64,000 nt of DNA from contig MU008158.1 in assembly GCA_010909165.1 (NCBI GenBank), positions 124,001-188,000 of the forward strand, read 5' to 3'. Numbering within the stretch: position 1 is the first letter of the stretch; each line of letters opens with the position of its first letter. Source of the stretch: Anthoceros angustus (lineage: Eukaryota > Plantae > Anthocerotophyta). A model generated the notes under the pieces. The model was given only the letters and a program-made list of their open reading frames with translations, had not been told where the DNA came from and made no database searches. The position numbers and the translations under genes are program-made. This document shows positions 34,579 to 62,049 of this stretch, piece after piece.

Positions 34579-34809
34579 TTTTAAATTATAAGAATATGCA
34601 GATTAAATCAACATGTTAATCAATTACATCTGAAATGTATATTAAAGAACATTAATAAATGAGTTCTAAAAGTGAGTTTTTAAATAAACTCAAAAGACAC
34701 GTCTAATGGGCGTAACCCTAACCAAGCGTTGTGACCTTATTAATCTCACTTAAGCTAACCAAACGTGCCCTAAATATAATCAGCATATGTATGCGAATAC
34801 TCTTTAACA
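34579..34809 (-). repeat. 3' LTR of copia-3 (231 bp)
   Basis: About 7 substitutions and 1 indel versus 61658-61887 by manual alignment; PPT AAGTGGGAG at 34810-34818. Confidence 0.93.
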
Positions 34810-35899: not shown

Positions 35900-38800
35900 C
35901 CCATACCAAGGCCAGAATGCTTGTTGTGAGCATCTCGCTTAAAGCCTTTGTAAGTATATCTGCGGGTTTTCTTGAGTTGAGACATACGAGTTCAATCTTT
36001 CATACACTGCAGTCCTCGATGTAATGGTATTCCACCTCCACGTGTTTCGTTCGTGCATGGAATCTGGATTCTTGGCTAAAGCCATCGAACCTTGGTTGTC
36101 GGTTTGTATTGTGGTACAAGTTGGGATCGGGATGCCTAACTCCTTAAGCGATAGCTTACACCAAACTACCTCTTTTCTTTTCTGCGGTGACGATACTACG
36201 CCGTCATGAAAAGCGTAAGCTTTTTGCTGACCGACAAAGCCCTGCGAATTGTAATCGTGAGATCTTCGATTTTACGCTATCAATATCACAATCAGTCGAT
36301 AAAGACTTCCGGTCCAATGCTTTTCCTTCTTGATACTTATCGTGATACCTAATCGGGTGTTCCTTTCGTGTCGAACACACGCTTAAGACTTGTCCAATGC
36401 TCCAGTCCTGGATTTTCCAAGAACTGGGAGAGTACACTTGTAGAATAAGCTATTTCAAGTCTCGTCGCGTTACTAGCGTATATAAGCTTGCCAACACCTT
36501 GTCTGTAAGGTACGCCCTTCATCTGTTCTTTCTCATCACGTGTAGTTGGTGACATAGCCTTGCTAAGTTTCTGACCTGCTGCCATGGGTGTCGATGCAGG
36601 CTTGGCATCCTTTAAACCCAGCGGTTCAACACAATCAAGAAGGTAACGTGGTTGAGTAAGAGTCATAACCCGTTGTTTTCTATCCCTCTGAATGTGTATT
36701 CCAAGGCAGCTCTGTAAGGGTCCCAAACAGGACATCTTAAACTTAGTGGCCAACACATCCGTAATGCTTGTTATAAAGGCATTTATTCTTGGGCCGATGT
36801 CGGATCGTCACGTAGGCCGGATAGCATATAACCTCTCCTTTCGAGTATATGTATAGGCTCATGCGCGCTCTTTGTGAATCAAGGCTAAAAGTTACGTATC
36901 TAGGGTAGCATTCCATTTCATAGTCCTTTAACCCATATAGACACTTGATCAGCTTACAGGCATAGTTTGCTTTACCCTTCACTACATATCCAGGCGGTTG
37001 CTGCATGTATATTTCTGTGTCTAATTTGCCGTATAAGAAAGCTGTTTTAACATCGTACATTTGCAACTCATAATCGTAATATGTGGATATGGCAAGGATA
37101 ATTCGAAGAGTGGACAACTTGACTACTGGAGAAAACGTTTCAAGATAGTCCAAGCCAGGGATCTGAGAGAATCCCCTTGCCACCAAACGATCAAAGGTAC
37201 CATCTGCCTTAACCTTTAGTTTGAAAACCCATTTGCATGAAACTAGCTTTCTGTCTGGAGGTAACTCCACTAGTTCCCATGTTCCGTTCTCCATTAATGA
37301 GTCATACTCTGATTGAATTGCTTTTTCCCATTCTTTGTGATCGGTCATAGCGCCTCTTCATAGGATTGAGGCTCAATGGGATCAAGAGAAGTGGCGGCAT
37401 TGCGGTCACATAAGAAGAAGAAGCTCGAATCCGAACAGTAGTAGTCGGGAGGTTGTCATTGTGGTGGGATACCTTCGGTTCTTCAAGCGGAGGGTCAACA
37501 AGCTCAGCATCTAAGGTAGGCTCAGTCGGATCATCAATTTGTTCTGGAGGATGATGGTCATGTTGATCCTGATGATTGTCTGGAACATCTTGTTGTGCGG
37601 GTTCTACAGCTACATCATCAAAACCTGCTGAATCATCAATATCATCAGCAGGATCTACCCCACCCACAGGGGCAACATCCTCAACAGGAACAACTTGAGT
37701 GCCATGATCAGTCTGGTCAAAGTGTGAATCTTGAAACGCTGATGCCTCGTCGTCACCAAGAGGAGGATCCTGGGATACTCCCGAGGCCCAAGTGCTACCT
37801 TCATCAAAAGTAGCGCTCCTAAGCGTATATAAGCTTGCCAACACCTTATGCTAGGTACGCCCTTCATCATTCTTTTCTCATCACGTGTAGTTGGTGACAT
37901 AGCCTTGCTAAGTTTCGACTGCGCCATGGGTGTTGATGCGGGCTTGGCATCCTTTAAACCCAATTTGTTCACAATCAAGAAGGTAAGCGTGGTTGAGTAA
38001 GAGTCATAACCCGTTGTTTTCTATCCCTCAATGTGTATTCCAAAGCCTGTAAGGGTCCCAAACAAGACATCTTAAACTTAGTGGCCAACACATCCGTAAT
38101 GCTTGTTATAAAGGCTTGGCATTCTTGGGCGATGTCGGATCGTCCACGTGTGCCGGATAGCATATAACCTCTCCTTTCGAGTATATGTATAGACTGCTGT
38201 CTGCCTGGCTCTTTGTGAATCCAAGTAAAGTTCTGTATCTAGGGTAGCATTCCATTTCATAGCTGACTGCTTTAACCCATATAGACACTTGATCAGCTTA
38301 CAGGCATAGTTTGCTTTACCCTTCACTACATATCCAGGCGGTTGCTGCATGTATATTTCTGTGTCTAATTTGCCGTATAAGAAATCTGTTTTGACATCGT
38401 ACATTTGCAACTCATAATCGTAATGTGTGGATATGGCAAGGATAATTCGAAGAGTGGACAACTTGACTCTTTGGAGAAAGCGTTTCAAGATAGTCCAAGC
38501 CGGGGATCGAGAGAATCCCTTGCCACCAAACGATCAAAGGTACCATCTGCCTTAACCTTTAGTTTGAAAACCCATTTGCATGAAACTAGCTTTACATGCA
38601 GGTAACTCCACTAGTTCCCATGTTCCGTTCTCCATTAATGAGTCATACTCTGATTGAATTGCTTTTTCCCATTCTTTGTGATCAAGTCTACGCAACGCCT
38701 CTTCATAGGATTGAGGCTCAATGGGATCAAGAGAAGTGGCAGCATTGACAGTCACATAAGAAGAAGAAGCTCGGAAATCCGGAGCACGGTAGTAGTCAGG

Positions 38801-41448
38801 AGGTTGTCGCTGGCGGGTGGGATACCTTCTAACTGGTTCTTCAACAAGCTCAACAAGCTCAGCATCTAAGGTAGGCTCAGTCGGATCATCAATTTGTTCT
38901 GGAGGATGATGGTCAGTTGATCCGATGATTGTACGGAACATCTTGTTGTGCGGGTTCTGACTACATCATCAAAACCTGAATCATCAATATCATCGGCCGG
39001 ATCTACCCCACCCACAGGGGCAACATCCTCAACAGGAACAACTTGAGTGCCATGATCAGTCTGGTCAAAGTGTGAATCTTGAAACGATGATGCCTCGTCG
39101 TCACCAAGAGGAGGATCTTGGGATACTCCCACTGAGGCCCAAGTGCTACCCTCATCAAAAGTAACGCTCCTAGCGTAGATAACTTTATTTTTAGGTACAT
39201 CATAAAGTTTATATGCTTTTATGCCCTCTGTATAGCCTAACATCAGAAGTTTTCTGGCCTTGTCTAATAGCTTCTTTCTTTTCTCCTTAGGAACGGAGGC
39301 GTATGCTATACAGACCAAAGATACGCAAGTGAAGTATGGATGGCTTGCGCCCTGTGAACGCTTCATAAGGGGTAAGACCAACTACGGAAGTGGTAGGCAG
39401 TCTGTTTTTGATATAGGTTGATGTCATAATGGCCTCCGCCCAATATGGCAGGGGAAGCTGAGCATGATGTAGGAGAGAAGATGTCATCTCCTGCAACGTA
39501 AGATTGAGGCGCTCAACCACGCCATTCTGTTGAGGCGTGTAGACAACTGTAAGCTGGCGTCCAATACCCTCAGAGTAGTCCTGAAACTCCTTTGAGGTAA
39601 ACTCTCCCCCGTTATCAGATCTTAGGGTTCTTAGTTGTTTTCCAGTCCACCTTTCAACATACTTGAGATATTCTTCAAAATAGCTGAAGCATTCACTCTT
39701 TTGCTTTAAGATGTAGGTTGTAACAAACCTTGTCTTGTCATCTGTAAATGTCAGGAAATACTTGCCACCACCAATGGATTCTTGTGAGAGTGGTCCACAT
39801 AAGTCCGTATGAACAAGTTCCAAGACATCTGAAGCTCTGTGTGGTTCTTTGTTCTTAAAGGTTGCTTGATGCCGCTTTGAGAGAACACAAGACTCACACA
39901 AAGGAAGTGGCACCAGAGGACCTATCTGCTCATGCTGGTAAAGATCACTTACAGCTAATTTCTGTAATTTTGCTGAATGTGGGTGCCCTAATCGTAAATG
40001 CCATAGTTTTGACTTTTCTGTTTGCTGTGCAGACGCATGAGTAGCATCCTTGGTCAAATGAGAAAATGGTATACTTCTATCTGTATGTAGACGGAACAAG
40101 TCCTTCTCAGAAGACCCAGAGGCAAGTACTCTAGTATGATTAAAGGCATCTAATACTTGACATTCTGTTTGAGTAAAGAGAATGTGTGATTATCAATTGA
40201 CTTCGGTGAAATGAGGTTACGTGTCATGTCTGGTACATAGTACACATCATGCAACACTAATACATTTCCTGATGGAACAGTCAGTTCTATTGTTCCAATG
40301 CCAGGAGACACCAGGGATCTGTCATCCCCCAGGTATACGTACTGATCCTTAACTGATTTGTACGTTTGAAATGCTTTTCTGTCAAGGCAAATATGGGCAG
40401 TAGCCCCTGTGTCTAAGTACCAATCTATGGTATACTTAACCTTTGTATTTGCTGACAAACAAGCAGGTGACAAGGATGAACTTGTGGCAAACAGTGTTGT
40501 ACCAACCGTGAGGGCAGAGGGGGTTGGTTGCTTCTTAACAACCACGTGAGTCTCAGCACTAGTCGAACCCTCCTTGCGAGGTACACCAGCCTGCTTTTTC
40601 CTGCACTCACGCTCCCAATGACCAGGTAATTTGCACCAGTTGCAAGCTCCTGTCCTTTTGGGTTTTCTCTGGCTAGTTCCACGTCCTTGTGAACCACCAC
40701 CTCTCGAGGTACTGCCCCCACCCCTGTTATAGGGTCTTCCTCCTCCACGTCCTCTGTTGGATGTATAGAGGGCTTCTTTTGCTTACATTTCGTCATTAGA
40801 TTTGCTTGCTTCCTCTTGCAATAAGGCTCCCACTAACTCTGCAAAGCTGGTTTCTGGCAGGATTACACCTGATGCCTTTGCAAGTTTCTCAGTCTGGAGT
40901 CTCGAGGCATTGAAGGAGGTCACAAAATGTGACCAAGAGTCTGGTAAGGATATGAGGAAGTAAAGTATTAGTGTATCATCTTTAACAACCTCGTTTGAAG
41001 CACTTTCAAGTCTGGACACAAGTGTCCTACAGTGTCCAAGGTGCTTTTCGATTGATTCTCCTTCTCTCATTTTACATAATTGTAAATTTCTCAAAGCTGT
41101 CATTTGACTTGTCTGATTGCTGCCTGCTTACAGGTCTTGAAGTCTTTTCCATATTTCTGCTGAGGTTGTACATCCTGAAGTTTGTCTTAACATCTCTGAG
41201 GTAAGACCACTCCTGATGAGGAACATAGCTGCCTCATCCTTTGCATCCCATGCATCAATTAACTTCTTCTCAGCAGCTGTAGGTAATATGGGAGGTGTGG
41301 GGGCCACTGGGGCCTTCTCTTCCCCAATGACTACCTTCCATAACTTCCTATTTTGTAAGGCCCCTTTCATGCGGATTACCCATATGTCGTAATCCTGACC
41401 TCCAAACCTATCTTTCTCCTTGAACCCTTCCCCACCCAAGCTAGATGA
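35900..41448 (-). pseudogene. copia-3 gag-pol, frameshifted, with a tandem duplication of about 1.35 kb in the INT-RT linker/RT
   Basis: gag DRFGGQDYDIWVIRMKGAL; CNWCKLPGHWEREC; WYLDTGATAH; LWHLRLGH and SDNGGEF (ORF 39287..40099); RT WELVELP..CKWVFKLK..RLVARGFSQ..YDVKTAFL..YGLK; RH ..ADILTKAL. Confidence 0.93.
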
Positions 41449-42869
41449 CCCTACTAGAAAAGGCCGCCTATGTTACACTTTTTGTTAAGATTTGAACCCC
41501 CCCATGTTGCAATTATGTTGAAATCTTGGGGTCTTGTTACACTTATTTGGCCCCTTGTTACGGTCGGGCTTGGTAACCAACCCTCCATCTTGTTACAATC
41601 GCGTTCTGATCTTGTTGCAATTTTGTTGCAGTAGTGAGGCGGTATTTGGCCCTTTCAAAATTTCAACATATTTGCAACAACCAAAGTGTTACACCCTCTT
41701 ATATTCTGATTTTGCTTGGTACCGAACCTCCTTCCCATGTGGGTTTGCCATTATTGCTTTCATTCCTTTGTTTCCCTGCCTTTATTGTTATCGTGTACGG
41801 ACTATAAGTATATAATATGCCTTGGCTTCCAGTGCGTATTGCCCGATGTCATTACTCAAAATTTATATCGATGCCTTTTCAAATTACACGTACAAGTGGT
41901 ATTGTTGTGCACTCCGTTTTGCTGATGCGGCGCAAATTTCTGGCGTTGTTTCCACCCTATTACTGCGGTGCCTTTCACGTCACTCGTATTTCGTGCCCTT
42001 GTGGGCGTCCCGTATAGGGTACTTGTTTTGGAAACCCTTACGGTCCACAAGAACAACGAAGGCGTAGTTTCGCACCCTCGGATAACATGCGGTTCTTTGC
42101 CGCATCCACATCCAAAATTGGCGTCCTCCCTCGGTAGCGGGATGAATCTACGGCATCCGCATCCGCGGTGTCCGTGCTCACTCGTCGGCGAGGAATGAAC
42201 CGCAATCTCCATCCGCGACCTCTGGCTCCCTCCTCGCGGAGGGGTGAATTGGGGTTGTGGTTGGCATTCTCTGTTGCCCGCCCGTTCGTTTCTGAAGGCC
42301 TACTCCTCGTCGTATGCGGTGGGTGCACCTCCCACAGTTACCGATTTTGCCCTTCCTTCCTCAAGCGGTGCTGGTTTTCCTTCCGTCTTTGCGGCTCCGA
42401 TTCCACTGTTTCACAGGATTTGCAGAACATATGACCACATGCCATTCCCATGGCCCTTGGCTGTAAGCACAAGCGGTGGCGAGTGCGGTTGCAATTTGCG
42501 AGCTTACCTTCTCGGCCTTCTCTTTGTTTTGTTTCCGCCCACTTCACGCCTCGATTGCGTGCTTGTCACGTTCCTTGGGCTGCCGGCCCTCGACGTAACT
42601 CTTCCTTCCCCATCGCCTTGCCGGGCATTCCCTTCCTTTCCTCTTAGGCCTCCTCCATCCTCCATAGGTTGCGTCACCTTTTGGAGCCCACGAGTCCATG
42701 CTCTCGGCATCGGCTCGGCCGGTATGTCGGGTACAAAGTTCGCAGGCGCGTTCACATCTCCATCCTCTTCCGCCACCTCCACATGCTCTTCCTCATCGTC
42801 ACCATGTCGTGGCCGTCGATCTCTGTCCATTGGAGGCTGCTGGATCCCCGTGAGATGTCTCATTTACAT

Positions 42870-44560
42870 CTCGCGCCTCCATTCCTGCACCGCCCGAAAC
42901 GTTTTTGGCACCATTGCGCACACATGTCGTCACCCCTGCGCCCTCCATTGTCCATCCGCCCATCTGTTGCTACCTTGATGTCCAGATCACGCCATTCCAC
43001 GGATGTGTACAGCCCCATGTACAACTCACTTACGGTGGCGCCCCTCTCCCTACCATGTTCTTCGTTGCCCCGTTTTCGAGTCACCCACCACCATGCCCCC
43101 TCTCGATCATGGCCCTTTGCTATGTTACGCCACAACCACGGCCGTTCGTGGTGTCGCTGGGACCACCACCTCATCGCCCTCGCCATAGTCGGCGATGTCG
43201 ATCATGCCCACAGGCTGCCCGCACCTTATCATGCGTTTGCCCCACCGTGTAAGCGTTTCCTTCTCTCGCGGTCGCACCCTGTTTTTTTTGTCATTTGGTG
43301 CTCCATGGCCTACCACCTTGATGTCTGTCCTCCCATGGTTGATCGTTCACCTCGTGGCGTCCCTCTCCATGTCGGGTTCCGCCGCCTTGTTGTCCCCGCC
43401 ATTCGTCCTTCCTTCCGCACATTTGTGCGCGTTTTTGGCACCATTGCGCACACATGTCGTCACCCCACGGTCCCCCCTCGCCTCCATTGTCCATCCGCCC
43501 ATCCTGTTGCGCCACTACCAGCCTTGATGTCCGCTGCATACTGCCATTCCCTGGATGTGTACATGGCCCCATGTACAACTCACTTACAGCTGACGCCCCT
43601 CTCCCTACCATGTTCTTCGTTGCCCCCGTTTTCCCCGAGTCACCCACAGCCACCATGCCCCCCCCTCTACGATCATGACCACTGCTATGTTCTGCCACAA
43701 CCACGGCCGTTCGTGGTGTCGCTGGGACCACCACCTCATCGCCCTCGCCATAGTCGGCGATGTCAGTCGCCTTGCCCCTGGCTGCCCGCACACTGTCATG
43801 CGTTTGCCCCACCGTGTAAGCGTTTCCTTCTCTCGCGGTCGCACCCTGTTTTTTTTGTCATTTGGTGCTCCATGGCCTACCACCTTGATGTCTGTCCTCC
43901 CATGGTTGATCGTTCACCTCGTGGCGTCCCTCTCCATGTCGGGTTCCGCCGCCTTGTTGTCCCCGCCATTCGTCCTTCCTTCCGCACATTTGTGCGCGTT
44001 TTTGGCACCATTGCGCACACATGTCGTCACCCCACGGTCCCCCCTCGCCTCCATTGTCCATCCGCCCATCCTGCGCCACTACCGGCCTTGATGTCCCATG
44101 CATCGCCATTCCACGGATGTGTACGGCCCCATGTACAACTCACTTACGGTGGCGCCCCTCTCCCTACCATGTTCTTCGTTGCCCCGTTTTCGACACCACG
44201 GCCACCATGCCCCCTCTCGATCATACCGCTATGTTCTGCCACAACCACGGCCGTTCGTGGTGTCGCTGGGACCACCACCTCATCGCCCTCGCCATAGTCG
44301 GCGATGTCAGTCGCCTTGCCCCTGGCTGCCCGCACACTGTCATGCGTTTGCCCCACCGTGTAAGCGTTTCCTTCTCTCGCCGGTCGCACCCCTGTTTTGT
44401 TTGTTCTGTCATTTGGTGCTCCATGGCCTACCACCTGCCTTGATGTCCTGTCCTCCCATGGTCGATCGTTCACCTCGTGACGTCCCTCTCCATGTCGGGT
44501 TCCACTTCTGCCTTGTTGTCCCCTGCCATTCGTCCTTCCTTCCTGCACATTTGTGCGCGT
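42870..44560. repeat. About 550-bp GC-rich unit in about 3 tandem copies
   Basis: ttttggcaccattgcgcacacatgtcgtcacccc recurs near 42903, 43433 and 44000. Confidence 0.9.
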
Positions 44561-44749
44561 TTTTTCTCCACCACATGCTTGTGGCTCCCCTGCTGCGGCT
44601 CGAATGCCTTCCCGCCTCACATCTAGCGCCCCATCCGGCGGGAAGGATTGACCCATTCCCACTATCCTCCTCCTTGGAAGGCCACGAGATCGGGATCCTT
44701 CTCCAACTCTATATCATTCGACGCAGATCCTTTTCCCGCGTTATCCGGC

Positions 44750-45916
44750 AATCTCACGCATCTCGTGGGTTCGTCCATACTTTGCCTCCCTCACGTCACG
44801 AGGAACTCCGGCACCGAATCGCCTGTGCCCGCCCTTCCATGTTTGTCGTTCCTCTAGCATGCCATACTCGCCGTCATCTGCGGGATCGTGCCATACCGTT
44901 GTGAAACCGCAACACCCACTGTCCGACCTCCCTTTCCCCACGGGTTTGGACCCATACCGCCATTTCGCTAGTCTCTCCTTGCTGCTATTTCATGCTTGGA
45001 TGGCTGAAACGGCCGTTCCTTTTGCTCGTGCCCATGCTAAGGCATCTTCCCACTCTTCGCCGTCCACCATGGAAGGTTTCCTATTCGGAGGTAGTTCCCC
45101 TTTTCCCTCTCTTCCAGCGCCGGCCGGCATCCACACATCGGCATTCGCGTCCGCGTCATTTGAGAGAAATGTCTACTTATGCACGACTTCGTAACGGAAG
45201 GCTTCCGCCACACACTTGATTAACCGGGCCTTCTCTGCTTTTGGGACGTCCCTCCACCTTGTCAGGTACCCCAGGTCGTTCACAACCTTTGTCCTGACTA
45301 GCTCCAGCATTTCTTCGTGTCTCCTTTCGCTTAGCCCACCGAACAACAGCGGTGCCCTGCCGACGCCTTTCACAACTCTGTCAATTGCGTTCCTCAGCCA
45401 TTTCACTCCATGCTTGTGCAGCAAAGCATTCACCAAGGCCTCGTTATCAACACCATTTACGAGGGCATTCACATCTATTGTGCCCTGTCCTTCCCTGCCT
45501 TCGCCGGTTGATATGACACCTCCACCTGCAACAAATTCCGCCCGCCATTCCCTTTCTAGGGCCTCTGCACCCGTCGGTCCTTCCTGCTGTCCTCCCCTCC
45601 CTCCGACCGTCCGTTGCCTGTGCCTGTTACCTTTCTGTGCATTCCCCGCATTTTCGTCCTCCTCTCTTACATCCAACTCCCTCCGCAGTCGGAAGCGTGA
45701 CGGGTTGTTCTCCTCTTCCCTTGATAGTTCCCATTCCCCCCTACTTGCCATCCATCGTCTTCGTGCACATCCAACTGCATTCACACAATGCACATGGAAA
45801 TGACGTTCATCCCGGATCGGTCTATATATCGACACGTACAATGTGTTGCGTGGCGTCACGATATCATCTGTGCCACAACACACTAACTGGTCCGACATTT
45901 CGCTTTCTTGGTCCAT
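44750..45916 (-). pseudogene. TnpA-like (Ptta/En/Spm, Transposase_24-like) gene 1
   Basis: HEEMLELVRTKVV..RWRDVPKAEKARLIKCVAEAF followed by RRWKRGKGELPPNRKPSMVDGEEWEDAL; position downstream of TnpD is typical of CACTA. Confidence 0.55.
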
Positions 45917-46599
45917 GTCCTGCAGCTCGGCTGCATTGCTCCGTCCGTCGGGATGGAAGGTGCCAAGTTTCGGCGTCGCCGAACTGAACCTACCATGCCG
46001 CCATCGCGTCCCTCCTTCACGCTTTGTTCCCTCCTTTGCGCCGCTGGCAGCCTCCTCCCACCGTGCTCGCCGATTGAACGCCGGAAAGGTGGATGGGGCG
46101 GATGAGGAGGATAGGCAAGACGACCTACCCTCCTCATCCCCTCCACCTTCCTACGGTCTCCTGTCGCGCGCGCCGTCGTAGACGCCTCCCGATTGTGGTA
46201 GGTTCGTCGGCCGCATACGGTCGACATCCTTGGCCACCTCTATCCGTCTCACGCCATTTCTGTGCATGCGTTCAGCCTTCCTTCCCCTGCAATTTTTTGG
46301 CTCCCTCTGTAGGCAACCTTTTCCTTGCCTTCGTCCCTCATGGCGGTATCGTGCACTCCTGTCCGTACAACTGGCTGGCCTTAGATTTGAAACATATGAG
46401 CCATCCATGGCGTCCTTCGAGGCAATTGCGAAACATGGCCAGCGCGGGGCGCCGCTTCCTCATATCCCTTGTTCATTGACTTGAGCCTACCGCCAGGGCA
46501 GCGTCACCAATGTGCATTCGAGGCATTTAGTGTTATTTGTCTTTGATGCGCGTTTATTCGTTTCATATACAGTGGAGGATTAATGTGCCTGGCAAGCCC

Positions 46600-49500
46600 G
46601 CCATATTATGGAGGTCGCCAAACCCGTCACTTGCGCGTCATCATCTCTACCCCAATTACGATCATTCCTATCTGCCTCAATCCATGGGTTCCTACCCTCC
46701 ATCCCGTCTTTGGTCGGGCGCCACTGCCCACCCGATGTTCTCCTCCATCGTCTCTGGATGTAGCATGCATTGGGTTACCTGTGAGGGCCACACAAATGGG
46801 CCATCGATGGAGCGCACCCTGTATGTGCAAAGTCTCTCCATGTTCACCAGGTGGAATCCCGTGTACGACGTCCGCAATGATGGCCTGGGTCCACTCGGCT
46901 CACACTCGTACCAGAACCTTGACATAGCATGTACTCCTCCCAGTGCACGCGCAAAATTTCTGTATGTGACCATAAAACACTCGCTCTCCTTCACAACCTT
47001 CATCTGCCCCTGTCCCGCTCATTAAAAATTTTGCGAGCACCGCACTGTCCTTAGTGCTCCGGCGCCGTCTATCTGCCTCTATCGTTCTAAGGTGGCTGCC
47101 TTTGTTCCACATATGCCGATGAGCTACTGCCTCCATTCGTGGACCGTCCATGATAGCGCGCACTTCATCTGTCATAGCCGGGTGATTCTCCCATGCGTTG
47201 GCAGCCCTTCCTGCATGCAGCCAAACCTTGAAAGTTCGCCGGTCTCCACGTGAACCATACCTCCTGACCTCTTCCTCGTACATATCTAGAAACGGCTGCA
47301 TCACCTCCATGTGGTACAACACATACGTGTGCGCCTGCCGTGCCTCCACGGCATCCAATTTGTACGGCCTCCCAGCACCGAGCACCTTCTCTCCGTCTCG
47401 CTCGCTCCATAGCCCTCCAACGTGACCATAATAACGCCGCAAAATGCCATCCCATAGTGCATGCTCTCCTCCTTCAAGTACCCCAACGCTATCGGCCTCT
47501 CCTCGCCGCTGCGGACGATCCCCCTCTCCCAAGGTATCTTTCGACAGGTACATCCACCTCGTGTGCCGGTCAGCACTACCTCGTCCACTAGATGGATTAT
47601 CGGTGAGTCGATATATCAAACATTTTGGAGGAATTGCTTTTCCGGATCGCACATCACCCTCGCTGCCTCCTCTTTCATTGCTTGGATATATCAAACATTT
47701 TGGCCCGGTATTGTCCATTGCTTGGATCCACATTGTCACACCCGGCTAACTTGACCACCGCCTTGTACACATCGGGGTCTATGCACCCTCGGAGGACAAT
47801 AGGGAAGACTACTTCCATCATTATGTGCTAGTCATGGCACTTCAGGCTTCCAACCTTGCCGCTCGCGATTTTCGCAGCTATGTTAGATCCATTACCCGTT
47901 GGCGACTTTATGCGTTTCATTTCCGCAATAACCCGTTTGATTCCTCTCGACCGGGACATATGCCGGGGCAATGGCCATCCTCTCTGAGCCATAACCACCC
48001 TTCCCTCCACTCGCTTCCATGTCCATCCTGAGGCTATGTCATCTCGGTCTCCCTCAGCGTATGCCAAATGGCTTGGCGTTGTTTTCTCGGCGTGCATAAC
48101 GTCCTTTGGTGCCCATTTCAGAAAACCGCCCGATGGGAGGTCTACAAACAAGGCCGACCTTCGTCGGGTTCCAAACCGGCCTCGATGGCGCGAGTCCGGT
48201 CGCGTTCACTCTGGCTGCCATATCTTCGATGACATCGACGAAAGATGGCGGGGCAGGTGGGGCCGATACTCTGCCACTCCATTGTACCAGCCCACGTCTG
48301 TCCACCGTCCACTGTCGTCCGCCGGAAGCCACCTCCTGCAACCAGCATATATTTCTTTCTTCAAGTCCGAAGAATACCGTGAATCCAAGTCCTCCCAGCA
48401 ATCAACACATGCACGGGCCCCCCTCACTTGCAATCCCGTCAGAGTCCCAAGGCCTGGGTAATCTGCTATGACGTGCAAAATCGCTGCTCGTAGTTTGAAA
48501 TGCCTGTTTGGATGGTTGACGGTTTGGAGAAGTCTTCCGTGTCCATGCCTCTCCAAAGGTCCTGCAGTCCTCGATTAAAGGCGCCATAAAGACATCGAAA
48601 TTCTGGCGATGCGAGCCCGCACAATCAACGGCATAATCACATTCGCATCCTTTGTGCTGGCCCATGGTGGCATATTGTGCACGAACAACAAACCGGCCAT
48701 ATGGATGTGTTTGCGGACACTGTGGCCAAATGGATTGAAGCCATCATGCACAATGCAAACCTTACGTTTCGTTGCTCTTCCCCAAAGCCGTCTACTCCAT
48801 CAAGAGCTGTCCAAGCGGGTGTCACCATGATGGTCATGTCCCGTCGGCTCTGTTTCCCCACATACCATGTCATCATCTACGTATGTGGCATTTGAAACAT
48901 TCGCCAGCGTGCCTTCAACGGAAAATGCCAAAGCACCTTACGCGGTATTTCATCTTCCTCATCAAACCCTTCCCTAAACCGTGGTGTGTCGCATTACGGG
49001 CCGTGTGGTCTCTCCTATAAAACACGGTCCCTCTCTCAGTGGATTTTCGTACCTTGGCCCAAACATGTATAAAAGTGCCTTGGCCTCGTACATGTCTTTG
49101 GGCGAGTTCCGTGGCGGAATATCGGTGGCAATTAGCCGCAAAAGTCCCATGGCGGCGTCGATGTCATACATTGATTGCCAAGACAACAATAAGAGTGTGG
49201 CGCTTAGCCTGCTTTCCTTGAACCATGCCCTTCGGGATGTCGTACAAGGCGTTTCACGCCCGCACGCCGTATCACGGCATCGCTTGCCCTCCCGTTCGCC
49301 GGTCGGTTGCCAACAACTCATCCATCGTGTACCCGGTGGGCAAGTCCTCACCATCTCCTCTTCCGAATTGTCTAATCGCCTGCTATCACGTTAGCATCGC
49401 TTCGTTGTGCCCTCGGACATATGTGACACCGTGTCCGGCGGGATGCATGGTGCCCACGGTTGCCCATGCCCTATTGCAGCATGGGCGGCCGCCATTAACC

Positions 49501-50850
49501 ACAACAATTGAACCATATGGAGCGATCGTGAAGGTCACAATGGTCCGTACCGGCTGGCGCTGCCCTTGCATTACTTGGCGAAGGCAATGAACTCGAGACG
49601 TGAGCTGGAATACGGCCTGCGCGCACTCTCGGCAAGGCGAGGTACATGCAACATCGCATCTCGTGGCATTCTCCCGCTGCGTGACATGGATGACGCGGAA
49701 GAAGAAGCTGGCGGGGAGGAAGAACTTGATTAAAATGGAAGCGTTCCTTCAACAATAAGCCCATTCGAACAAAAGTACGCGCGTGCACAAACAACTTTCC
49801 ACCATGGACGACGTGGACTCACGACTCGACCTCGTTGCCTCGGGAGAGCTCGAGGATGCGTCGCTGCAGCTAAAGCATCCGCAGCTGTGTCGACCATGAT
49901 GGTCATGTCCCGTCTGGCTCTGTTTCCCCACATACCATGTCATCATCTCGTATGTGGCATTTGAAACATTCGCCAGCGTGCCTTCAACGGAAAATGCCAA
50001 AGCACCTTACGCGGTATTTCATCTTCCTCATCAAACCCTTCCCTAAACCGTGGTGTGTCGCATTGGCATGCGTGTAGTCGGCGTACTCTCCCCTGTATAA
50101 AACACAGTCCCTCTCACAGCAGTGGATTTTCTCGTACCTTGGCCCAAACATGTATAAAAGTGCCTTGGCCTCGTACATGTCTTTGGGCAGGCAGTTCCCT
50201 GGTGGCAGAATATCGGTGGCAATTAGCCGCAAAAGTCCTATCATGGCGACGTCACTGATGTCATACATTGATTGCCAAGACAACAATAAGAGTGTGGCGC
50301 TTAGCCTGCTTTCCTTCGAACCATGCCCTTCGGGGATGTGGTACAAGGGCGTTTCACCTGCCGCCCGGCACGCCGCTGTCCTGGCATCGCTTGCCCTCCC
50401 GTTCCGCCCAGGGTCGGTTGCCGCCAACAACTCATCCACTGTGTACCCGGTGGGCAAGTCCTCACCATCCGTCTCCTCTTCCGAACTGTCTAATTCGCTG
50501 CTATCACTTAGCATCGCTTTTCATTGTGGTGCCCTCGGACATATGTGACACCGTGTCCGTGAGGATGCATGGTGCCCACCATACGGTTGCCCATGCCCAT
50601 CGTCACGCAATTATTGCATGGGCGTGCCATTAACCACAACAATTGAACCATATGGAGCGATCGTGAAGGTCACAATGGTCCGTGCTGGCGCTGCCCTTGC
50701 ATTACTTGGCGAAGGCAATGAACTCGAGACGTGGTACGGCTGACGCGGCCTGCACGCACTCTCGGCAAGGCGGAACATGTACACGGCATACGCATCTCGT
50801 GGCATTCTCCCGCTGCGTGACATGGATGACGCGGAAGAAGAAGCTGGCGG
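46600..50850 (-). pseudogene. CACTA TnpD/Tnp2 transposase (Transposase_21, DUF4218 and DUF4216-like), frameshifted, 5' part duplicated
   Basis: LPKDMYEAKALL..RYEKIHCCERDCVLYRGEY; FDVFMAPLIED; VIADYPGLGTLTG..GARACVDC; DVMHAEK; HTRWMY; AHTYVLYH; TGFHLVN; PFVWPSQVTQ. Confidence 0.92.
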
Positions 50851-53800
50851 GGAGGAAGAACTTGATTAAAATGGAAGCGTTTCCGCACTTCAACATAAGC
50901 CCATTCGAACAAAAGAAGTCGCGTGCAAACGGTACTTTCCACCATGGCACGTGGACTCACGACTCGACCTCGTTGCGGGGAACGGAGCTCGAGGATGCGT
51001 CGCTGCAGCTAAAGCATCCGCTATGTGTCGACAATGGAAGCCTCCGGACACCCTATGGTGTTCTCACGAATCAAGCGTTGCGAGACATCACCAAGATGTC
51101 TCGCGAGACGCCAAATGCCACCGCCAGAGCCATCGAGTGGCATGGAACGGACTTGTGGGTCCGTGTTTGGATTACCGCTGCCCCGCAGAGAGTGCCGGGG
51201 AAGACGAGTTCAGACACCGAGATGTCTTCCGGATGGACGCCGTCCGCCGCACCCACCCGCCTTCCGCGAACGGCGGGATAGAAAGGGATGACGGTCGGTC
51301 GATATCGAGGGTTGGGGACAACGGTCGGAACGGTTCGCCCGCTGGGTGACTCCACTTCGTGCAACATTCAATGTCATATGTTTGGCGTGCATTGACATTT
51401 GTCATGCCTTGTGTCAAGAATGCAAAAAAGGCAAAACATTTCGTGCGGGCGCCACCATCGCTAGTGTGCATAACCTCCTTTATCCGCACTTTGTCTACGG
51501 AGGAAAGCGTGGAGCTCATGCTCGAAATCTCGTAGAGCTCCCAAGCGGCGAAAACAAGCTAACGGACACCGCACCCAATGGCTGCAAATCGGCCCCATGC
51601 CGCTCCCTCCCTCTCCTGTCCATGCCTCAATTGTGGATCTTCATCCGGGCATGCATCCGATGTGAACCCTCCACATCTGCAGCTTCATTCTGCCCAAACA
51701 GACGACTTAGATCGCACAACATCTCCGACTTCGTCACGCCTTTGCAAGAATTTCGCCTGGGTCTCCGGTGCCTCTTCTTCCTGGAGTCCCCTCACTGAGG
51801 GGTTGCCCGCTTGAGCGAGCCCCGCGCATTCAACCACGTCGATTTCCTCTTCCTTCACGTGGACGATGGCCTCGGACGTCGCCCCTCGCGGCTCCCTTGG
51901 CCTCGCCTTCCTTTGGACCTCCCTTCGTCCTTTCTTTCTGCGGCCTGCGGATATGAACTCCTTCCTTTCCTAACGGGTCCATGTGCTGCATCGCGACACA
52001 CATTCCGCAGACTCGGTTCCTTTTAGAGCAGGTGACCTTACGTTTTTGGGCAACAGGTGTGCGGAATTAGTAGCCTTTGTTTAATTCATGTCCATCCTCA
52101 CGGCGCTAAGACCAGCCACAATCGGAAGTTGAAGGCAATCATGACCCACGTAACACGGAAATGTCATGGATCGCGGGTTGCTTGAGGCCTGACAGCATGG
52201 AGGGCACCACTCCATACCCTCCATTCCGCCAACCACCTCACAGCGCCTGCTTTATTTCCAGCCACCAAGTGTACAGATTCAGCTTGCCGGAAAGGACATT
52301 CCGGCAAGGCGTTCCACATTACCCCCGCCGCACCTCGACCTCCGAGGTGTACACCTCCTCCCTCCACCAGCATGTCTCGCGCACGCCAAATGCCACCGCC
52401 AGACTCCGACCCCGAGCCATCGAGTGACATGGAACGCGACTTGTGGGTCCGTGTTTGGATTACCGTCAGGCTCTCGCAGCAGAGTGCCAGGGAAGACGAG
52501 TTCAGCGCTGCACACTGAGATGTCTTCCGGATGGACGCCCTCGGTCGTCGCCGGCCACACCCAATTCGCCCTTCTGGGGCGAACGATGGGATAGAAAGGG
52601 ATGACGGTCGGTCTGATATCGAGGGTTGGGGACAACGGTCGGGAACGGTTCGCCTGCTCGTGGGTGACTCCACTTCAGGCAACATTCAATGTCATATGTT
52701 TGGCAGACTGCCTGCGTACATTGACGGTGTCATGCCTTGTGTCAAGAATGCAGTGAAAGGCAAAACATTTCAGGCAGGGGCGCCACCATCGCTAGTGTGC
52801 ATAACCTCCTTTATCTGCACTTTGTCTACGGCGAGGGAAAGCGTGGAGCTCATGCTCTCGAAATCTCGGTAGAGCTCCCAAGCGGCGAAAACAAGCCCGG
52901 AAAACGGACACTGCACCCAATGGCTGCAAATCGCGTCCCATGCCGCTTCGTCCTCCCTCTCCTAGGTCCATGCCTCTGAATTGTGGATCTTCATCCACAG
53001 TGGGCGTGCATCCGATGTGAACCCTCCACATCTGCAGTTCATTCTCCAAAAGACGACTTAGAAAATCTCGACTTCTGGCCTTTGCAAGAATTTCAGTTCT
53101 GGTCTCCGGTGTGCCTCTTCTTCCCAGTGGAGTCCCCCCTCGGCCGCCTGAGGGGTTGCTGCGCCCGCTTGAGCAGAGCCCCCCGCCTCTGCGCATTCAA
53201 CCACGTCTGATTTCCTCTTTCCGTTCGCCTCACCAGGGACGATGGCCTCGGACGTACTGCCCCTCGCGGCTCCCTTCGCCTTCGTCTTCCCTTTGGACCT
53301 CCCCTTCGTCCTTTCTTTCTGCGGCCTGCGGATATGAACTCCTTCCTTTCCTAACGGGTCCATGTGCTGCATCGCGACACACATTCCGCAGACTCGGTTC
53401 CTTTTAGAGCAGGTGACCTTACGTTTTTGGGCAACAGGTGTGCGGAATTAGTAGCCTTTGTTTAATTCATGTCCATCCTCACGCGCTAAGACCGACAATC
53501 GGAAATTGAAGGCAATCATGACCCACGTAACACGGAAATCGCGGGCCGGTTGCACTGTCTGCAGACGGTATGGAGGGCACCACTCCATACCCTCCATTCC
53601 GCCAACCACCTCACAGCGCCCCTTTCTTTATTTCCAGCCACCAAGTGTCTTCGATTGCCGGAAAGGACATTCCGGCAAGGCGTTCCACATTACCCCCGCC
53701 GCACCTCGACCTCCGAGGTGTACACCTCCCTCCCTCCACCAGCATGTACCTATGAAGAGACGACCGGGGAGCGAGGACCGTGCATACCAGTCCTTGATGG

Positions 53801-55188
53801 CAGACGGAGAGCAACCTTCCGTCGTCCTTCGGGGCAATGGACGGAGAGCAACCTTCCGTCCATCGCCCTGATGGCCATCGTCGGTCGCGACGGTCCAATC
53901 CTTCATAGCCATACTCGGTGCCTATCTATAGGAGCCCACAACCTCCGCACACCGCAATGTTGGAAGGAAGATAGTTGAGCACGGAAGGAAAAGGCGGCAT
54001 GCGGGGAACCAAAAACTATTGAACGCAATGAGTGAAAGGGTGAATCCCGGGCGACACCTTGGGCGGCACAGGTCATGGACGATTCACACACACAAACTAA
54101 CCCCACGGCCGAGATCCGGCGAGGTGGTGGTCGAGACACGAACTCAAGGCGTTGGGAGGCTTCCACTTGGCCATTGGAACGGGGTTCCAAAAAGGCGAGG
54201 ATACACACGGTTGGCACAGCCACCGGGTCCTTGACGGCCATCGATTCGTGGAGGTGTCCAAAAGTGCAAGCCGGCAGTATGCCCAACCCATTCAAGATGT
54301 AGGAATGCGGAAGTCACAGATCCTGGCGGTCACATCCGTGGACACTAGGGACGAGGGCTCGGGCATACCGTGCCGCCAAGGCGGGGGCGGGGCGGGGGCG
54401 GGCGGAGGAGAGGTGGAGACGGGGTGGGGAGGGTGGAGGGGAGTGATGTGGGGTTCACGGTAGGCCTCAAAGCTGGGGAGGAGACTTAAGCAAGAGCTGG
54501 AGCTTTTCACAGTACCGTCGTGAGTCCGTAGTTAAAGCAAATCTCGGGAGAAGAGCCGATTTCTACACGCAACTGTGGCCTCCGGAACATCGGTTTACGG
54601 TTGGGAGAATCTGCGATATCGACCGTCCGTTGTGTGCGACAAGCTTGCAGAGGCAGGCATTGACGGCCACAGCGCTGACAAGCCCGTCTGCCATGGCGAC
54701 CTTTGGCGGTGGTGTCGCCCCGGCAGTGACGTGAGTAGCGGGGTTTTCAGGAGGTAAGCATAATTAACAACAGTGCCAACTGCGTACATCGAACAAGTAC
54801 AGGTATAAACCTTGACAATGGTGCAACAGCAGATGGACGGCGGCCTAGGATCATGGCAGACCACCCCAAGTGCACAGTTTTGTAATGACTGGTATGATGA
54901 CACATATTCATTTCACACCCACGCTATCCACGATGCACGGCCGTTTGCACCGAGGTGCCTCACAAGGGTGACGCACGGCGCGTCTCTCGTGGTCACCGGG
55001 ATTGTCTTTGGTCCATGATGAGTCAATGCATGTCATGGTCCTTGGATTGGGAAATGCCCATGTCATTTGTCCTTCGCCATGACATGTACATGCATGACAT
55101 GGTCCACGGACATCGCATGACTTGGGCCATGACATGTATATGCATGTCATGGGCTTGACCATGGCATGCATTTACATGTCATGGCCGA

Positions 55189-56594
55189 ACATATATAGTC
55201 ACGAATATCTCGCTCACACATAGCGGCCAAGCACATGGCATTTCGAGGGCCAAGGACAAATGCGACCTCCTGTCATTGCACAAGGATTTATTTGTCCTTG
55301 GGCCTCGACATGTTCGTGCATGTCATGGCCCATGGTCTTGTCATGTCCTTGGCCCATGACGTGCATATACATGTCATGGGCCAAGGACATGATATGACCA
55401 TGACATGCATATGCATGTCATGGTCCAAGGAAACATTTTTCCTTGGACCATGAAATGTATATGCATGTCATTGTCATGCGCATGACATTTATATAATAGC
55501 CATGGGCCAAGGACATTTATATAATTGCCATGGCCCAAGGACAAATTTGTCCTTGGGCCATGACATGTATATTACAAGGCGTTTCCTGGGCCAAGGACAA
55601 CTTTGTCCTTGGCCCATGGCAATGCATGGCATGGTCAAGACCAGGACATGAACGCCATTTCGTGGGCCAAGGACACATTGTCCTTGGCCCGTTATGCATG
55701 GCATGGTGTGGCCCAGACATAAATTCATGTCATGGGCCAAGGACAAATTGTCCGCCCAGACATGTAAATTCATGTCATGGGCGAAGGACAAATTTGTCCT
55801 TGGCACGAAAGCGATGCCACATATTGGTGTCTATATATGTATAGCACTGATGAGTGTGGTGTAGACTTCATTTGGGAGGACATGCTATTATGAGGACTTA
55901 AAACACAAGGAGCGCATGATGAGGTGGCCAAACATGCATGGGGATGGGCCTAGTTGTCATGGGCCAAGGACAACTTTGAGCTTGGCCCATGACATGTAAA
56001 TGCACGGCATGGTCTTCACCATGACATGCATATACATGCCATGGGCCAAGCTCAAAGTTGTGCTTGGCACATGACATGCATATGGATGTCATGGGCCAAG
56101 GAAAACTTTGAGCTTCGCCCATGACATGCATATGCATGTCGTGCCAGGACATGCATATGTATATATATGACATGACATGCATATACATGCCATGGGCCAA
56201 GGACAAAGTTGTCCTTGGCCCATGACATGCATATGCATGTCATGGGCCAAGGAAAACTTTGTCCGTGGCCCATGGCATGTATATGCATGTCGTGCGGAGG
56301 ACATGCATATGTATATACATGACATGGTCCAAGGAAAAATGTTTCCTTGGACCATGACATGCATATGCATGTCATGGTCATGTCATGTCCGTGGGCCATG
56401 ACATGTATATGCATGTTATGGGCCAAGGACATGACATGACCATGGGCCATGACATGGACGCACAGCTCGAGGCCCAAGGACAAATAGTTCCTTGGGCAAT
56501 GACAAGCGGTGGCATTTGTCCTTGGCCCTCGAAATGACTGTGAATGTTCTTGGCCGTCGAAATGTGTGTGCGAGAATTTGGTGACTATATATGT
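55189..56594. repeat. About 1.4-kb imperfect inverted repeat built from short palindromic units
   Basis: acatatatagtcac...gagggccaaggacaaatg (from 55189) is the reverse complement of the sequence ending at 56594; the arms consist of CATGACATGCATATGCATGTCATG and GGCCAAGGAC units. Confidence 0.9.
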
Positions 56595-56871
56595 CTACGA
56601 GTGATAAGTGTGGTCATCAGTTGATTAGGTCCCACTTGTTATAATGAGGAGTTCAGACATAAGGGGAAGGCGATGAGGTGGCAAACTTTGAATGGCGCCG
56701 CATGCGCATGGCGGGCATGCGCATCGCACGATGTCCGGAGACATGGCCTATTACTTCATGACCGTCAAGTGTTACTTCCACTTGCATCTTTTCAATCGTC
56801 ACCTTGCGGTTGCAATTCTTTTTGTCTCGGTTCGCTCCTGTTCAGGCTTTCGACTTTGCGCGGTTACAAAG

Positions 56872-58569
56872 ATGGTGTGGGACGTGGACTTCGAGGATTT
56901 GGATGAGGCTGTCCGCCTAAGCCTGGCACCGACTTCAACCTGCCGTGACACACCCGCCGGTGAAGATGGCGTTCCGGCCGCGCAGTCAAAGGAGGGCGTC
57001 ACGCCGTCTGCAGGCAGTGGCAATGGCGACTATGGCGACAGCGCGGCTGGTGGTGGGCAAGCACTCGAGTGAAAGGGACCACGTGCGCGGCAGCTGGTCA
57101 TGGAAGTGTCACGGCTCCGGCGGTGGGAAACGGCGAAGCCCGGGAGGTGGAAACGGTGGGTGGACCCATAGAGGCCGGGCGGCTCCATCCGAGGCAGCGG
57201 GGAGGCGTGGCGGAGGGTGGCACAGTGACAACACAGCGCCACCATGAAGATGGGCAGGCAAGTGTCCCTTCCAAGGTTGCGGAGGAGGCAGGTGATGGCG
57301 ATGCCCAGCAAGTTGCCCCTGTCGAGGGTGGGGATGGGAAGGAAGATGCTTCCCACCATCAACCCCCCGGGAGGAGCGCACCGCTCCTATGGGCATTCTT
57401 GGCTGCTCAGGGGTTTTGGTCCTCTGGAGTGGCAGGAGGTGGCCCTTCCCGTGGAGCAGGTGGCTGGTCCTCGGGATGAGCGAACATCGGTCCCCCGCCC
57501 TTGTGGCATGGATGCCCTAGCAAGTGCGCCTACTGGGGCCGCCCATCCCGCCTCCGGAAGCGTGGACCACTTGCCTATGCCGACGGCAATGCGAGCGAGG
57601 TGCACGCGAGCCAAGGAGAGGAAGGGCATGCTCCCGACCTCCACTGTGAAGAACAACTGGATGTGGGAGATGAGGACAGGGTTGAGGGGGCAAGCCAGCC
57701 AGAGGCCGAGACGGCCGACTCCGAGGCGGATGGAAATGGCGAGGACGAGGACAATTGCGAGGATGAGGCTGAGGTGGGTGATATGGAAGAACGGGTGGCG
57801 ACGTCCCCCACCACCGCAACTCCGGCAGAGATAGGAGAACTCACCACAGTACGGCGGTAAGCAACTCGGCAGCGTCATTCTTTGTGTGTGCTCCACAGGC
57901 GGGAGGAGTGTTTATGGTATCGGCCGCTGCGATGGAGGTTGGGTCGAAAATGAGGATCGGTGTGGAGGATGAAGAAGCACTGTTGAGGAGGGCCTTCCAT
58001 CAGCGTGTCTTGGAGCTAGTGTGTGCGAAGATGACGTTGATGGTGCCGTGGACAAGCCATGACGAGAGTTTGAGGGAGAGGCTGGTGAGTATGGTAGAGG
58101 TTGAGTTTCCAGGTATCGACCGGATGAGATTGTGGCAAGGTTTGCAGGTGCATCACGGACAAGGAACCACAACGTAGGGAAGAAGGTGAGGCAAGCTGCA
58201 TTGATATGGAGGGAGAAGGGTAAGGATGCGAAATGGCTCCATCCGCCGAATGTCACGAAGGCATGGAGGAAGGCCGTGGGCGGGGGTGGTTACGTTGCAC
58301 AAGAATGGGGGGGTGTGGCCAACACCTCGCAGCGCCGCGTCGCAAGGCCGGCAAAGCATGATCAAGGGACCAATCCCTTTGGTCCACTAGGGGCGAAAGA
58401 TTTTGAAAGGAAGTTCGTGCAACGGTGGGGAGGGAGCGCAACGGTAGAGGAGCTGCGGTGGGCAGCGAGGAATGGCTTGGAGAACATGCCGGAGTATTGG
58501 AGAGGTAAGGGAAAAGGCATGACGGTGGCAGTGAGAGGGCAAGTGGGCGAGGCAACGCTTGTCGACTGA
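56872..58569 (+). pseudogene. TnpA-like (Transposase_24-like) gene 2, low-complexity N-terminus, frameshifted
   Basis: HQRVLELVCAKMTLMVPWTSHDESLRERLVSMVEVEFP; KWLHPPNVTKAWRKAV...SQRR..HDQG..GPLG..F; visibly homologous to gene 1. Confidence 0.55.
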
Positions 58570-59649
58570 TGTGATCACCTGGAGTGGCATGTGCAGGATG
58601 CTTGGAGACGGGAATGCAAGAGGGAAGCAATGGACAGAGGCGAGGGGACAGTACACATGCAGGCGTTGAAGAGGGTGGGGGGGACAACGAGGGAGAGGGA
58701 GGGAAGACAGTTGCTGGTGGGCAGCTGGAAGAAGGGGGACAACAATGGAAGTGGTGGCACCGACACGGAGGATCACACGGAGCGTGTCGAAAAGTGTAAG
58801 TGCAAATGTGTAACATGTCATGCAAATGGCGTAATGGCGAAAAATTGCGTGCTTTGTTGCAGCCATGGTGGTCGAAAAGAAGGAAGCTGTGGAAGGATGT
58901 GTGGGAAAGCAGAGCGTGAGGCGTGAGCAAGGGAAGAGAAAGCGGGCACCAAGCATGACACCAACAAGCAAAGGAAGAAAACGGGTTCTACACGGAAGAA
59001 GAAGAAGAATCCTCCGAGGACAACCAATGAGTGTAGGGGTGTCTGCAAGAAGCCTAAGTAGCATAGGATTTAGTTTTATGTAGGAAGAAAGTGAGGGCTT
59101 CGATGAGTTAGCGCCATCTAGATGAATGTGTGGTTGGAGCGCTGGTGATGTGAAGGCGAAAGGGAGAAGCTTGTGGCTCGAATCGATGACTCAAGAATAC
59201 AATTGTGACATTGCCGCTTTTGTGACACAAGCGAGAATTGGTAGGTGTGGGTTGAAGCACGATTGCTAGGTTTCGCATGTGTGAAAAGACGACCAGACGG
59301 GTTGGGGAAACGACGACGCCATTGCTCATGGGTACCGGACAAAAGCATGGGATTAGTCCTCATGTACCACCCTTTCCCAATTTCGTGACATCAAGGTATG
59401 TATGTATAAAGGAACCTAGTTGTCCATGCACTCGCGTTGGTGGAGTGGAGGAGGCATGGTGACGAACAAGCGGTCATGTTCGGTTAAGTCAAACGATTTT
59501 GCAACGCAAGAACAAGAGGTAACGGAGGCGCCAAGAATGCGATAGCAAAGACCAAAGAAGAGAACGATTGCGGTCAAGAATGCGACCAGACAAGATATAT
59601 CCGTGTAATGGAAATAAAAATCAGATAATCCGGTGTTCATGTACAAATA

Positions 59650-59880
59650 CCTACCTACAAGTAGGTACCAGACGTATGAAGGTAAATCCAGATTCTACAA
59701 GTAGGTACCAGACGTATGAAGGTAAATCCAGATTCTACAAGTAGGTACTGACGTATGAAGGTAATGTGTATTCTATCTCTCAAGATATCGTGCAAAAGCC
59801 ATAAACAAATAGTATACAAGCCAATAATAGCTATGGTAAGCCATAAACAATTAGTATACAAGCCAATAATAGCTATGGTA
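59650..59880. repeat. Short tandem repeats (40-bp unit about 3 copies; 42-43-bp unit 2 copies) in the right arm of the CACTA
   Basis: aagtaggtaccagacgtatgaaggtaaatccagattctac; agccataaacaa.tagtatacaagccaataatagctatggta. Confidence 0.85.
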
Positions 59881-60345
59881 GGGAAAAAAGGTTGATATAG
59901 GAATTATGGCTGTCAGGTGGTAGAGGAAGGAGACAATTAATGAGAGACAATTAATGAGCATGTTACTGTGATATCCAGGTTTGGGCGCCATTAACAATAG
60001 TTGTGAAGAGAGAGTGCAATGAAGAGCAATAGGAAAAACATTAACTAATTGTACTTCCAATGGGGTGTAATAAAGAGGGGGACTGATAGAGAAGAGAGAG
60101 AGGGGTCCTTGTTACAGTCATGTTGCATTTGCATGAGGGAATTCATAAACAATGCGTATGAGAGAGGGGATGTAGTTAAGAGGGTGAAGTGGTAGGAGAG
60201 AGAGCAAGGTTCGTGTTAAGATTGTAGGCCCAATGCGGAAAGAAATGACAAACTTAATACCAAGCCTCCAAATGATGTTGCAAGTTACAAGTGTAACATA
60301 AAATTGCAACAACGACTGTAACATAGGGGGCCATTTCTAGTAGGG

Positions 60346-60433
60346 TTTAGGGTTTAGGGTTTAGGGTTTAGGGTTTAGGGTTTAGGGTTTAGGGTTTAGG
60401 GTTTAGGGTTTAGGGTTTAGGGTTTAGGGTTTA
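60346..60433 (+). repeat. Interstitial plant telomere array (TTTAGGG)12 plus TTTA
   Basis: 12 perfect units at 60346-60429, directly after the TIR end TAGGG. Confidence 0.98.
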
Positions 60434-60754
60434 CCTCAGGTATCTACTGCAGATGCCATTTTTCCTCTTTGGTATTTTTGGGTTAGCTACTCCCAAAATT
60501 ACTAAGATTCGGTGATGGCTTTGCAGGGGTTAGAAGACTCAAGACTTCAAACATGTAATGCACATGCGGCTCGATTCTGATATGTTGTGACATCGAGTCA
60601 TCGTCTGATTCTAGCGTCGACTCTTGTTGTTGAATTCTGTTTCTGATTTTCTGATTTCTAATCTCCCACTTATTGTAAGCATATATAGAGCAGGATGGAC
60701 AAGAATTAGGACTTCCAAACATATGTTTTTACTTGTTTTCGTTGCATGCTTGAG

Positions 60755-61645: not shown

Positions 61646-61657
61646 GCTGCGATACCA
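61646..61657 (-). promoter_or_regulatory. Variant PBS (tRNA-iMet-like) of copia-3
   Basis: TGGTATCGCAGC immediately after the 5' LTR. Confidence 0.75.
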
Positions 61658-61887
61658 TTTTAAATTATAAGAATATGCAGATTAAATCAACATGTTAATC
61701 AATTACATCTGAAATGTATATTAAAGAACATTGACGAATGAGTTCTGAAAGTGAGTTTTTAAATAAACTCAAAAGACACGTCTAATGGGCGTAACCCTAA
61801 CCAAACGTTGTGACTTATTAATCTCACTTAAGCTAACCAAACGTGCCCTAAATATAATCAGCATAGATATGCGAATACTCTTTAACA
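61658..61887 (-). repeat. 5' LTR of copia-3 (230 bp)
   Basis: Matches 34579-34809. Confidence 0.93.
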
Positions 61888-62049
61888 TGAGTGCTATGCC
61901 CTAGGTGTTGCGGCCGTTGCTAGGCCCTAGATGTTTGCGATTGATTGATGGTTCGGTTGATTGTGTGATTGTTGTGAGCTCTATTACATGTTCGTGAGTC
62001 CATTTTCATCTCTGATTCTTTGCTTATACGCTTTTCGGTTGGGCTTCTT

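Follow-up and report, generated by a model that had tools for sequence, protein, structure and literature searches.

A telomere-repeat tract in register with the terminus of a CACTA-type transposon nested in a copia retrotransposon: a candidate case of telomere addition at a transposon break

Background

The origin of interstitial telomere repeats in plants is still debated. Closely related events are described from vertebrates. Comparison of tract-bearing and empty loci in the horse shows short interstitial telomere tracts that were inserted at breaks (PMC7215372). At 78% of the informative horse sites the 3' end exposed 1–6 nt in register with the repeat, with at least 5 nt in 5%, and small deletions of the flanks were the commonest side effect (PMC7215372). 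Telomere addition associated with repair thus has a precedent at vertebrate breaks (PMC7215372).

Telomere repeats at the ends of transposons are described from ciliates. For Tel-1 of Tetrahymena, extension of a linear intermediate by telomerase was proposed by Cherry and Blackburn in 1985 (cited in PMC13085455), and under this model, as noted there, G-strand repeats are expected 3' of the right end. Telomere repeats at the transposon ends of Oxytricha TBE1 were reported by Herrick et al. in 1985 (also cited in PMC13085455). In plants, an Arabidopsis preprint finds EnSpm elements enriched in interstitial arrays and proposes, as a seed of such arrays, that telomerase heals the breaks left by cut-and-paste transposable elements (10.64898/2026.05.10.723265). 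This type of healing has so far been only a guess.

Results

The satellite and the host copia element

The locus lies in a 64-kb window, i.e., the whole stretch of DNA that was analysed, and has three nested levels. A 27-bp satellite contains a Ty1/copia element on the minus strand, which in turn contains a CACTA element. The features of the two outer levels are as follows.

34364..34578, unstranded: 27-bp host satellite, the target of the copia insertion (Tandem Repeats Finder array)
34574..34578, unstranded: left copy of the copia 5-bp target duplication (TSD), TGAGT (sequence)
34579..34809, minus strand: copia 3' LTR in element orientation (alignment with 61658–61887)
36349..41448, minus strand: decayed Ty1/copia gag-pol (Pfam matches)
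61646..61657, minus strand: primer-binding-site-like TGGTATCGCAGC, just inside the copia 5' (right) LTR (LTR alignment)
61658..61887, minus strand: copia 5' LTR (alignment with 34579–34809)
61888..61892, unstranded: right copy of the copia 5-bp target duplication, TGAGT (sequence)

The LTR pair is 231 nt with 96.5% identity, and the two TGAGT copies are identical. The 27-bp satellite resumes to the right of the copia at position 61893 (61893–61940), and when the sequence is read across the copia the satellite unit is restored with TGAGT duplicated. The Pfam matches on the minus strand, from 41439 to 36746, are to gag, Pol_BBD, integrase, SH3-like and RVT_2 domains, which is the copia order. 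The element thus shows the properties of Ty1/copia elements, with an LTR pair, a 5-bp TSD and the gag-protease-integrase-RT order. The gag-pol domains are split among short open reading frames (ORFs). The TGGTATCGCAGC segment is presumably a primer-binding site of the initiator-tRNA type, which it resembles.

The DNA on either side of the telomere tract is part of a single old, decayed copia, because the LTR pair matches, the 5-bp TSD is perfect and the satellite is restored. With both flanks from one copia, the insertion is local; neither a rearrangement nor the joining of unrelated sequences is involved. A large-scale misassembly is rejected by the copia TSD and the restored satellite. The original prediction of an insertion nested in a copia is thus borne out by the LTR pair, the 5-bp TSD and the restored satellite.

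Other repeats are present at this level of the nest. The copia pol has an internal 1.36-kb tandem duplication (36475–37832 and 37822–39182, 90% identity), and part of the RT/integrase region is therefore present twice. To the left of the 27-bp satellite is a tandem array at positions 33262–33803 that has a 25-bp period (96-bp higher-order period) and about 22 copies. Two adjacent direct repeats of about 260 nt with 87% identity, 62987–63239 and 63273–63539, are found to the right of the copia.

The CACTA-type element

The inner element is 18.9 kb and has the following features.

41449..60345, minus strand (transposase remnants): CACTA-superfamily element (TIRs, subterminal motifs, composition)
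41449..41477, plus strand: left TIR with terminus CCCTA (terminus comparison)
48209..48574, minus strand: tnp2-type (Transposase_21) transposase fragment (Pfam PF02992, E 2.8e-15, 56.6 bits against a cutoff of 28.6)
60317..60345, minus strand: right TIR, in which the last five bases of the plus strand are in phase with the telomere unit (TIR match, Tandem Repeats Finder start at 60341)

The TIRs are 29 nt and match as an inverted repeat at 27 of the 29 positions. The motif TGTTRCA, counted together with its complement, is present eight times in the first 400 nt and six times in the last 400 nt, compared with 0.13 per 400 nt in the interior. Subterminal clusters of short repeats of this type are a character of CACTA / En-Spm elements. 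A tnp2 / Transposase_21 domain is a further character of this group (CMC), and the PF02992 score is above the gathering cutoff. The transposase is present in short ORF pieces and is therefore not functional; because it is in pieces, the copy is not autonomous. Composition also separates the two elements, with a GC content of 53–63% in the CACTA interior vs 41–45% in the copia.

The TIRs do not start with 5'-CACTA. Both ends have CCCTA, with four of the five bases the same, and CCCTA is treated here as a variant terminus of the CACTA superfamily. The remainder of the TIR is close to the classic CACTA sequence, CACTACAAGAAAA.

Self-comparison of the 64-kb window revealed no second copy of either the CACTA element or the copia. 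Exact look-up of 10 ORFs from the window in a protein collection gave no match. In a word-index homology search, which says nothing on longer kin, no match was obtained with an ORF of the transposase region, with the N-terminal gag ORF or with a third element ORF. A pattern from the left TIR (41455–41477) had no match in metagenome, viral or prokaryote genome contigs, and an empty-site pattern (from 41436–41445 and 60437–60452) had none in metagenome contigs.

The interior of the CACTA element (42000–59000) has a strong strand asymmetry. The GC skew is about -0.3 at 43–45 kb and +0.4 at 58 kb, and the sign flips near 54 kb. Internally repeated segments are present, and a 542-aa ORF at 42669–44297 repeats its own motifs. 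Positions 55077–56536 are dense in inverted and tandem repeats, with arms of up to 277 nt at 88% identity, periods of 25–151 nt and a GC content of 47–50%, which is below that of the surroundings. This segment may represent an internal hairpin array, or else a nested insertion of the foldback or MITE-like type. Most long ORFs of the 42000–59000 interior have no Pfam match. A 176-aa ORF on the minus strand (49984–50514) has a cysteine/histidine-rich stretch and no Pfam match at E 0.01; the stretch resembles the N-terminal region of plant CACTA transposases.

The telomere tract and its junctions

The right TIR is followed by the feature of main interest.

60346..60433, plus strand (G-strand): perfect plant-type telomere-repeat tract, 88 nt (Tandem Repeats Finder, direct count)

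The original prediction described a TIR end that continues in register into a TTTAGGG tract, with the G-strand outward, and this anatomy is confirmed at positions 60346–60433. The 88 nt consist of 12 perfect 7-nt units and 4 additional nt. The plant-type unit is the telomere repeat of land plants generally (PMC6410037), and is taken on that basis as the repeat of the host's own telomere. The tract begins directly after the last TIR base, 60345, with no spacer, and the copia resumes at 60434. Tandem Repeats Finder places the array at 60341–60433, with 13.3 copies and 100% matches; as the array starts at 60341, it takes in the last 5 nt of the TIR, which share its phase. The G-rich strand is the plus strand and points outward from the CACTA element. 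At the left junction the copia ends at 41448 and the CACTA element begins at 41449, and no telomere repeats are present there.

A search of the 64-kb window with a two-unit telomere pattern gave 11 overlapping matches, all in the tract, compared with 0.01 expected. The tract is the sole telomere-type sequence within the window. There are no Ns or quality breaks at the locus. Given a tract beside a TIR, the observed orientation (1/2) and phase (1/7) have a joint chance of approximately 1/14, and the spacer-free join adds to this argument.

The orientation and the register together mean that the tract grew outward from the 3' end of the TIR rather than from the copia side. The G-strand is outward and in register with the TIR, and at a break between TIR and flank the plus-strand 3' end is on the element side, which therefore gives outward synthesis from the TIR. 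Synthesis from the flank is rejected, as the orientation is wrong; the plus strand would then read as a C-rich repeat.

In the gag-coding strand, the telomere repeat has stop codons in all three frames by direct reading, and the tract is therefore not part of a working copia gag. A tract as old as the copia, which has an LTR divergence of 3.5%, would be expected to have about 1.5 substitutions in 88 nt. The perfect sequence is mildly suggestive of a tract younger than the copia.

The gag start and the candidate CACTA target duplication

Two short features are found where the copia is interrupted.

41446..41448, unstranded: left flank triplet TGA, candidate copy of the CACTA target duplication (pairing with 60431–60433 not significant)
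60434..60462, minus strand: copia flank with the presumed gag start (translation)

The two gag pieces were translated separately. The flank codons down to 60434 are in frame with the gag that runs from 41448 downward, and read ...RYLR then SSSLGGEGFKEKDRF... across the junction. The DUF4219/gag Pfam match begins 12 residues into the left gag piece, which is the place expected for the N-terminus of a copia gag. The ATG at 60462–60460 is one base out of frame with the downstream gag, and its frame reaches a stop after 7 codons. A rebuilt gag start had been proposed for this locus; the codons do continue in frame across the junction, but the ATG can be used as the start only if an extra base is assumed.

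The right triplet beside the flank (60431–60433) reads TTA, as would the repeat if it simply ran on. A match at two or more of three positions occurs by chance in 10 of 64 cases. The proposal of a 3-bp TSD with one mismatch, TGA/TTA, is therefore not supported. The pair is confounded with the telomere repeat, is indistinguishable from chance and is set aside as evidence of a TSD. An intact right copy of the CACTA 3-bp TSD is missing.

Discussion

Proposed mechanism

On balance we lean towards a model in which the TIR 3' end, exposed at a transposase-made break, was the primer for a short interstitial telomere tract that was then rejoined to the flank. That a transposase made the break and telomerase the tract, and in which order, is inferred. 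A double-strand break would have formed exactly at the boundary of the right TIR and the flank, where a CACTA transposase cuts. The exposed 3' end of the plus-strand TIR, in which five bases match the telomere unit, would have paired with the template of the telomerase RNA and been lengthened in register by about 12 units. End-joining would then have connected the lengthened end to the waiting copia flank, with the C-strand filled in. The observed junction would result if a tract with the end ...TTT had been joined to the A of what was once TGA, or if the G alone had been lost.

The break may have arisen in one of two ways. One-ended (abortive) cleavage of an already integrated copy is favoured over an excised linear intermediate that was extended and then entered a copia break by non-canonical end-joining. 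Re-cutting of an integrated copy is favoured because transposase-mediated integration needs a free TIR 3' OH, and because of the clean left junction, the contiguous flanks and the lack of a TSD copy at the right junction only. A right TSD copy that is not intact fits a right junction that was re-opened and processed. The original prediction placed elongation by telomerase either in transposition or in repair. Addition linked to repair is the best mechanism of the two; extension during transposition is less likely, since a tract would bury the 3' OH that is needed for transposase-mediated joining. The support for the mechanism comes from a single locus.

Alternative explanations

Templated filler DNA is established at plant end-joining sites, and the tract could have been copied at the same break without telomerase, either by invasion of a telomere or telomere array through the 5-nt microhomology or as filler reverse-transcribed from telomeric RNA. 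Copying of this type would give the orientation, register and perfect units that are observed, and the sequence cannot separate it from telomerase action; retrotranscribed telomeric RNA has been named as an alternative route (PMC7215372). It is nevertheless an unlikely source, as 5 nt is short for strand invasion and the tract is without non-telomeric filler or variant units. There is a similarly small chance that the tract is older than the CACTA insertion, i.e., that it was present in this copia copy or its lineage, or that a composite was duplicated, and that the CACTA element landed at its edge. The finding would then be ordinary. Such an insertion would have to fall exactly at the edge of the tract and leave the far side free of repeats, and on top of this would have to agree with the TIR end in phase and orientation, at a chance of about 1/14. 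The first 3 nt after the TIR also differ from the left flank triplet, and a pre-existing tract would consequently give no TSD either. Since the tract destroys gag in all frames, it could not have come from an active master copia.

The resemblance of the TIR terminus to the telomere C-strand raises the question of whether telomere repeats are a regular part of the ends of this family, as in ciliates, or whether the family resides at chromosome ends. Terminal telomere repeats are present on TBE1 of Oxytricha (PMC13085455), but the left end of the present CACTA copy has no tract, and a regular association is very improbable. An artefact, in which a chimeric read or a consensus error placed or inflated the tract, is given an equally low probability. 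The length of such tracts in assemblies is error-prone; however, a chimera would not end at the exact TIR and at the in-frame continuation of the same TSD-flanked copia, and the locus shows neither Ns nor quality breaks. Like microsatellites, interstitial telomere tracts differ in length (PMC6410037), and growth in situ by replication slippage, starting from the TIR end and the target duplication, was considered as well. The TIR end and a 3-nt TSD amount to less than 1.5 units with the wrong number of T's, and two or more copies of a 7-nt unit must be present before slippage can start. A slippage origin is rejected because the seed is too small, and it is the least probable of the explanations.

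Comparison with known systems

Exact telomere units form a short internal array at this locus, as is characteristic of short interstitial telomeric sequences (SITS), and the locus shares their in-register property through the 5 in-phase nt of the TIR end. By analogy, the present junction fits the break-insertion pattern of the horse. The sequences described by Nergadze, Giulotto and coworkers (PMC7215372, PMC2246262) are from vertebrates and are proven with orthologous empty sites, and the breaks are unspecified. In contrast, the unit here is of the plant type, and the break would coincide with a place where the transposase cleaves and where 5 nt in register are provided.

The element is similar to plant CACTA / En-Spm (CMC) elements in its tnp2 domain, short TIRs, subterminal clusters and large size with cargo. 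It differs from them in the CCCTA terminus, which gives a 5-nt telomere match at the 3' end, whereas CACTA gives a 1-nt match. This suggests a rule by which the last bases of a transposon terminus govern the ease of telomerase action. It is doubtful that the CCCTA-ended CACTA family as a whole is a systematic telomerase substrate, with ends that are capped whenever a transposase exposes them. If this were true, the family would be a starting point for interstitial telomere tracts throughout this plant genome, and at times for new chromosome ends; it would be a plant counterpart of the Tetrahymena Tel-1 proposal and a concrete source of interstitial arrays.

In chromosome healing in plants (McClintock; wheat deletion lines; maize fission, PMC12094224), telomerase likewise caps a broken end that is not telomeric. 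Healing leaves a terminal telomere, whereas the extended end at this locus would have been rejoined to its partner and is now internal. If confirmed, the locus would be an example at base resolution of the healing of cut-and-paste transposon breaks that has been suggested for Arabidopsis (10.64898/2026.05.10.723265), with a known cleavage site, a transposon end as primer and a product in register.

The ciliate transposons are similar in that telomere repeats are found directly at a TIR transposon terminus, and the orientation seen here is the one predicted by the Tel-1 model (PMC13085455). Tel-1 and TBE1 have repeats at both ends and in all their copies, and in TBE1 these belong to the element. 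Here the repeats are at one end of one copy, and the left end directly abuts the flank. The best reading is that the kind of event is known, namely the insertion of a short interstitial telomere sequence where a break was repaired, and that priming by a transposon terminus is a new variation, which echoes an old hypothesis from the ciliates.
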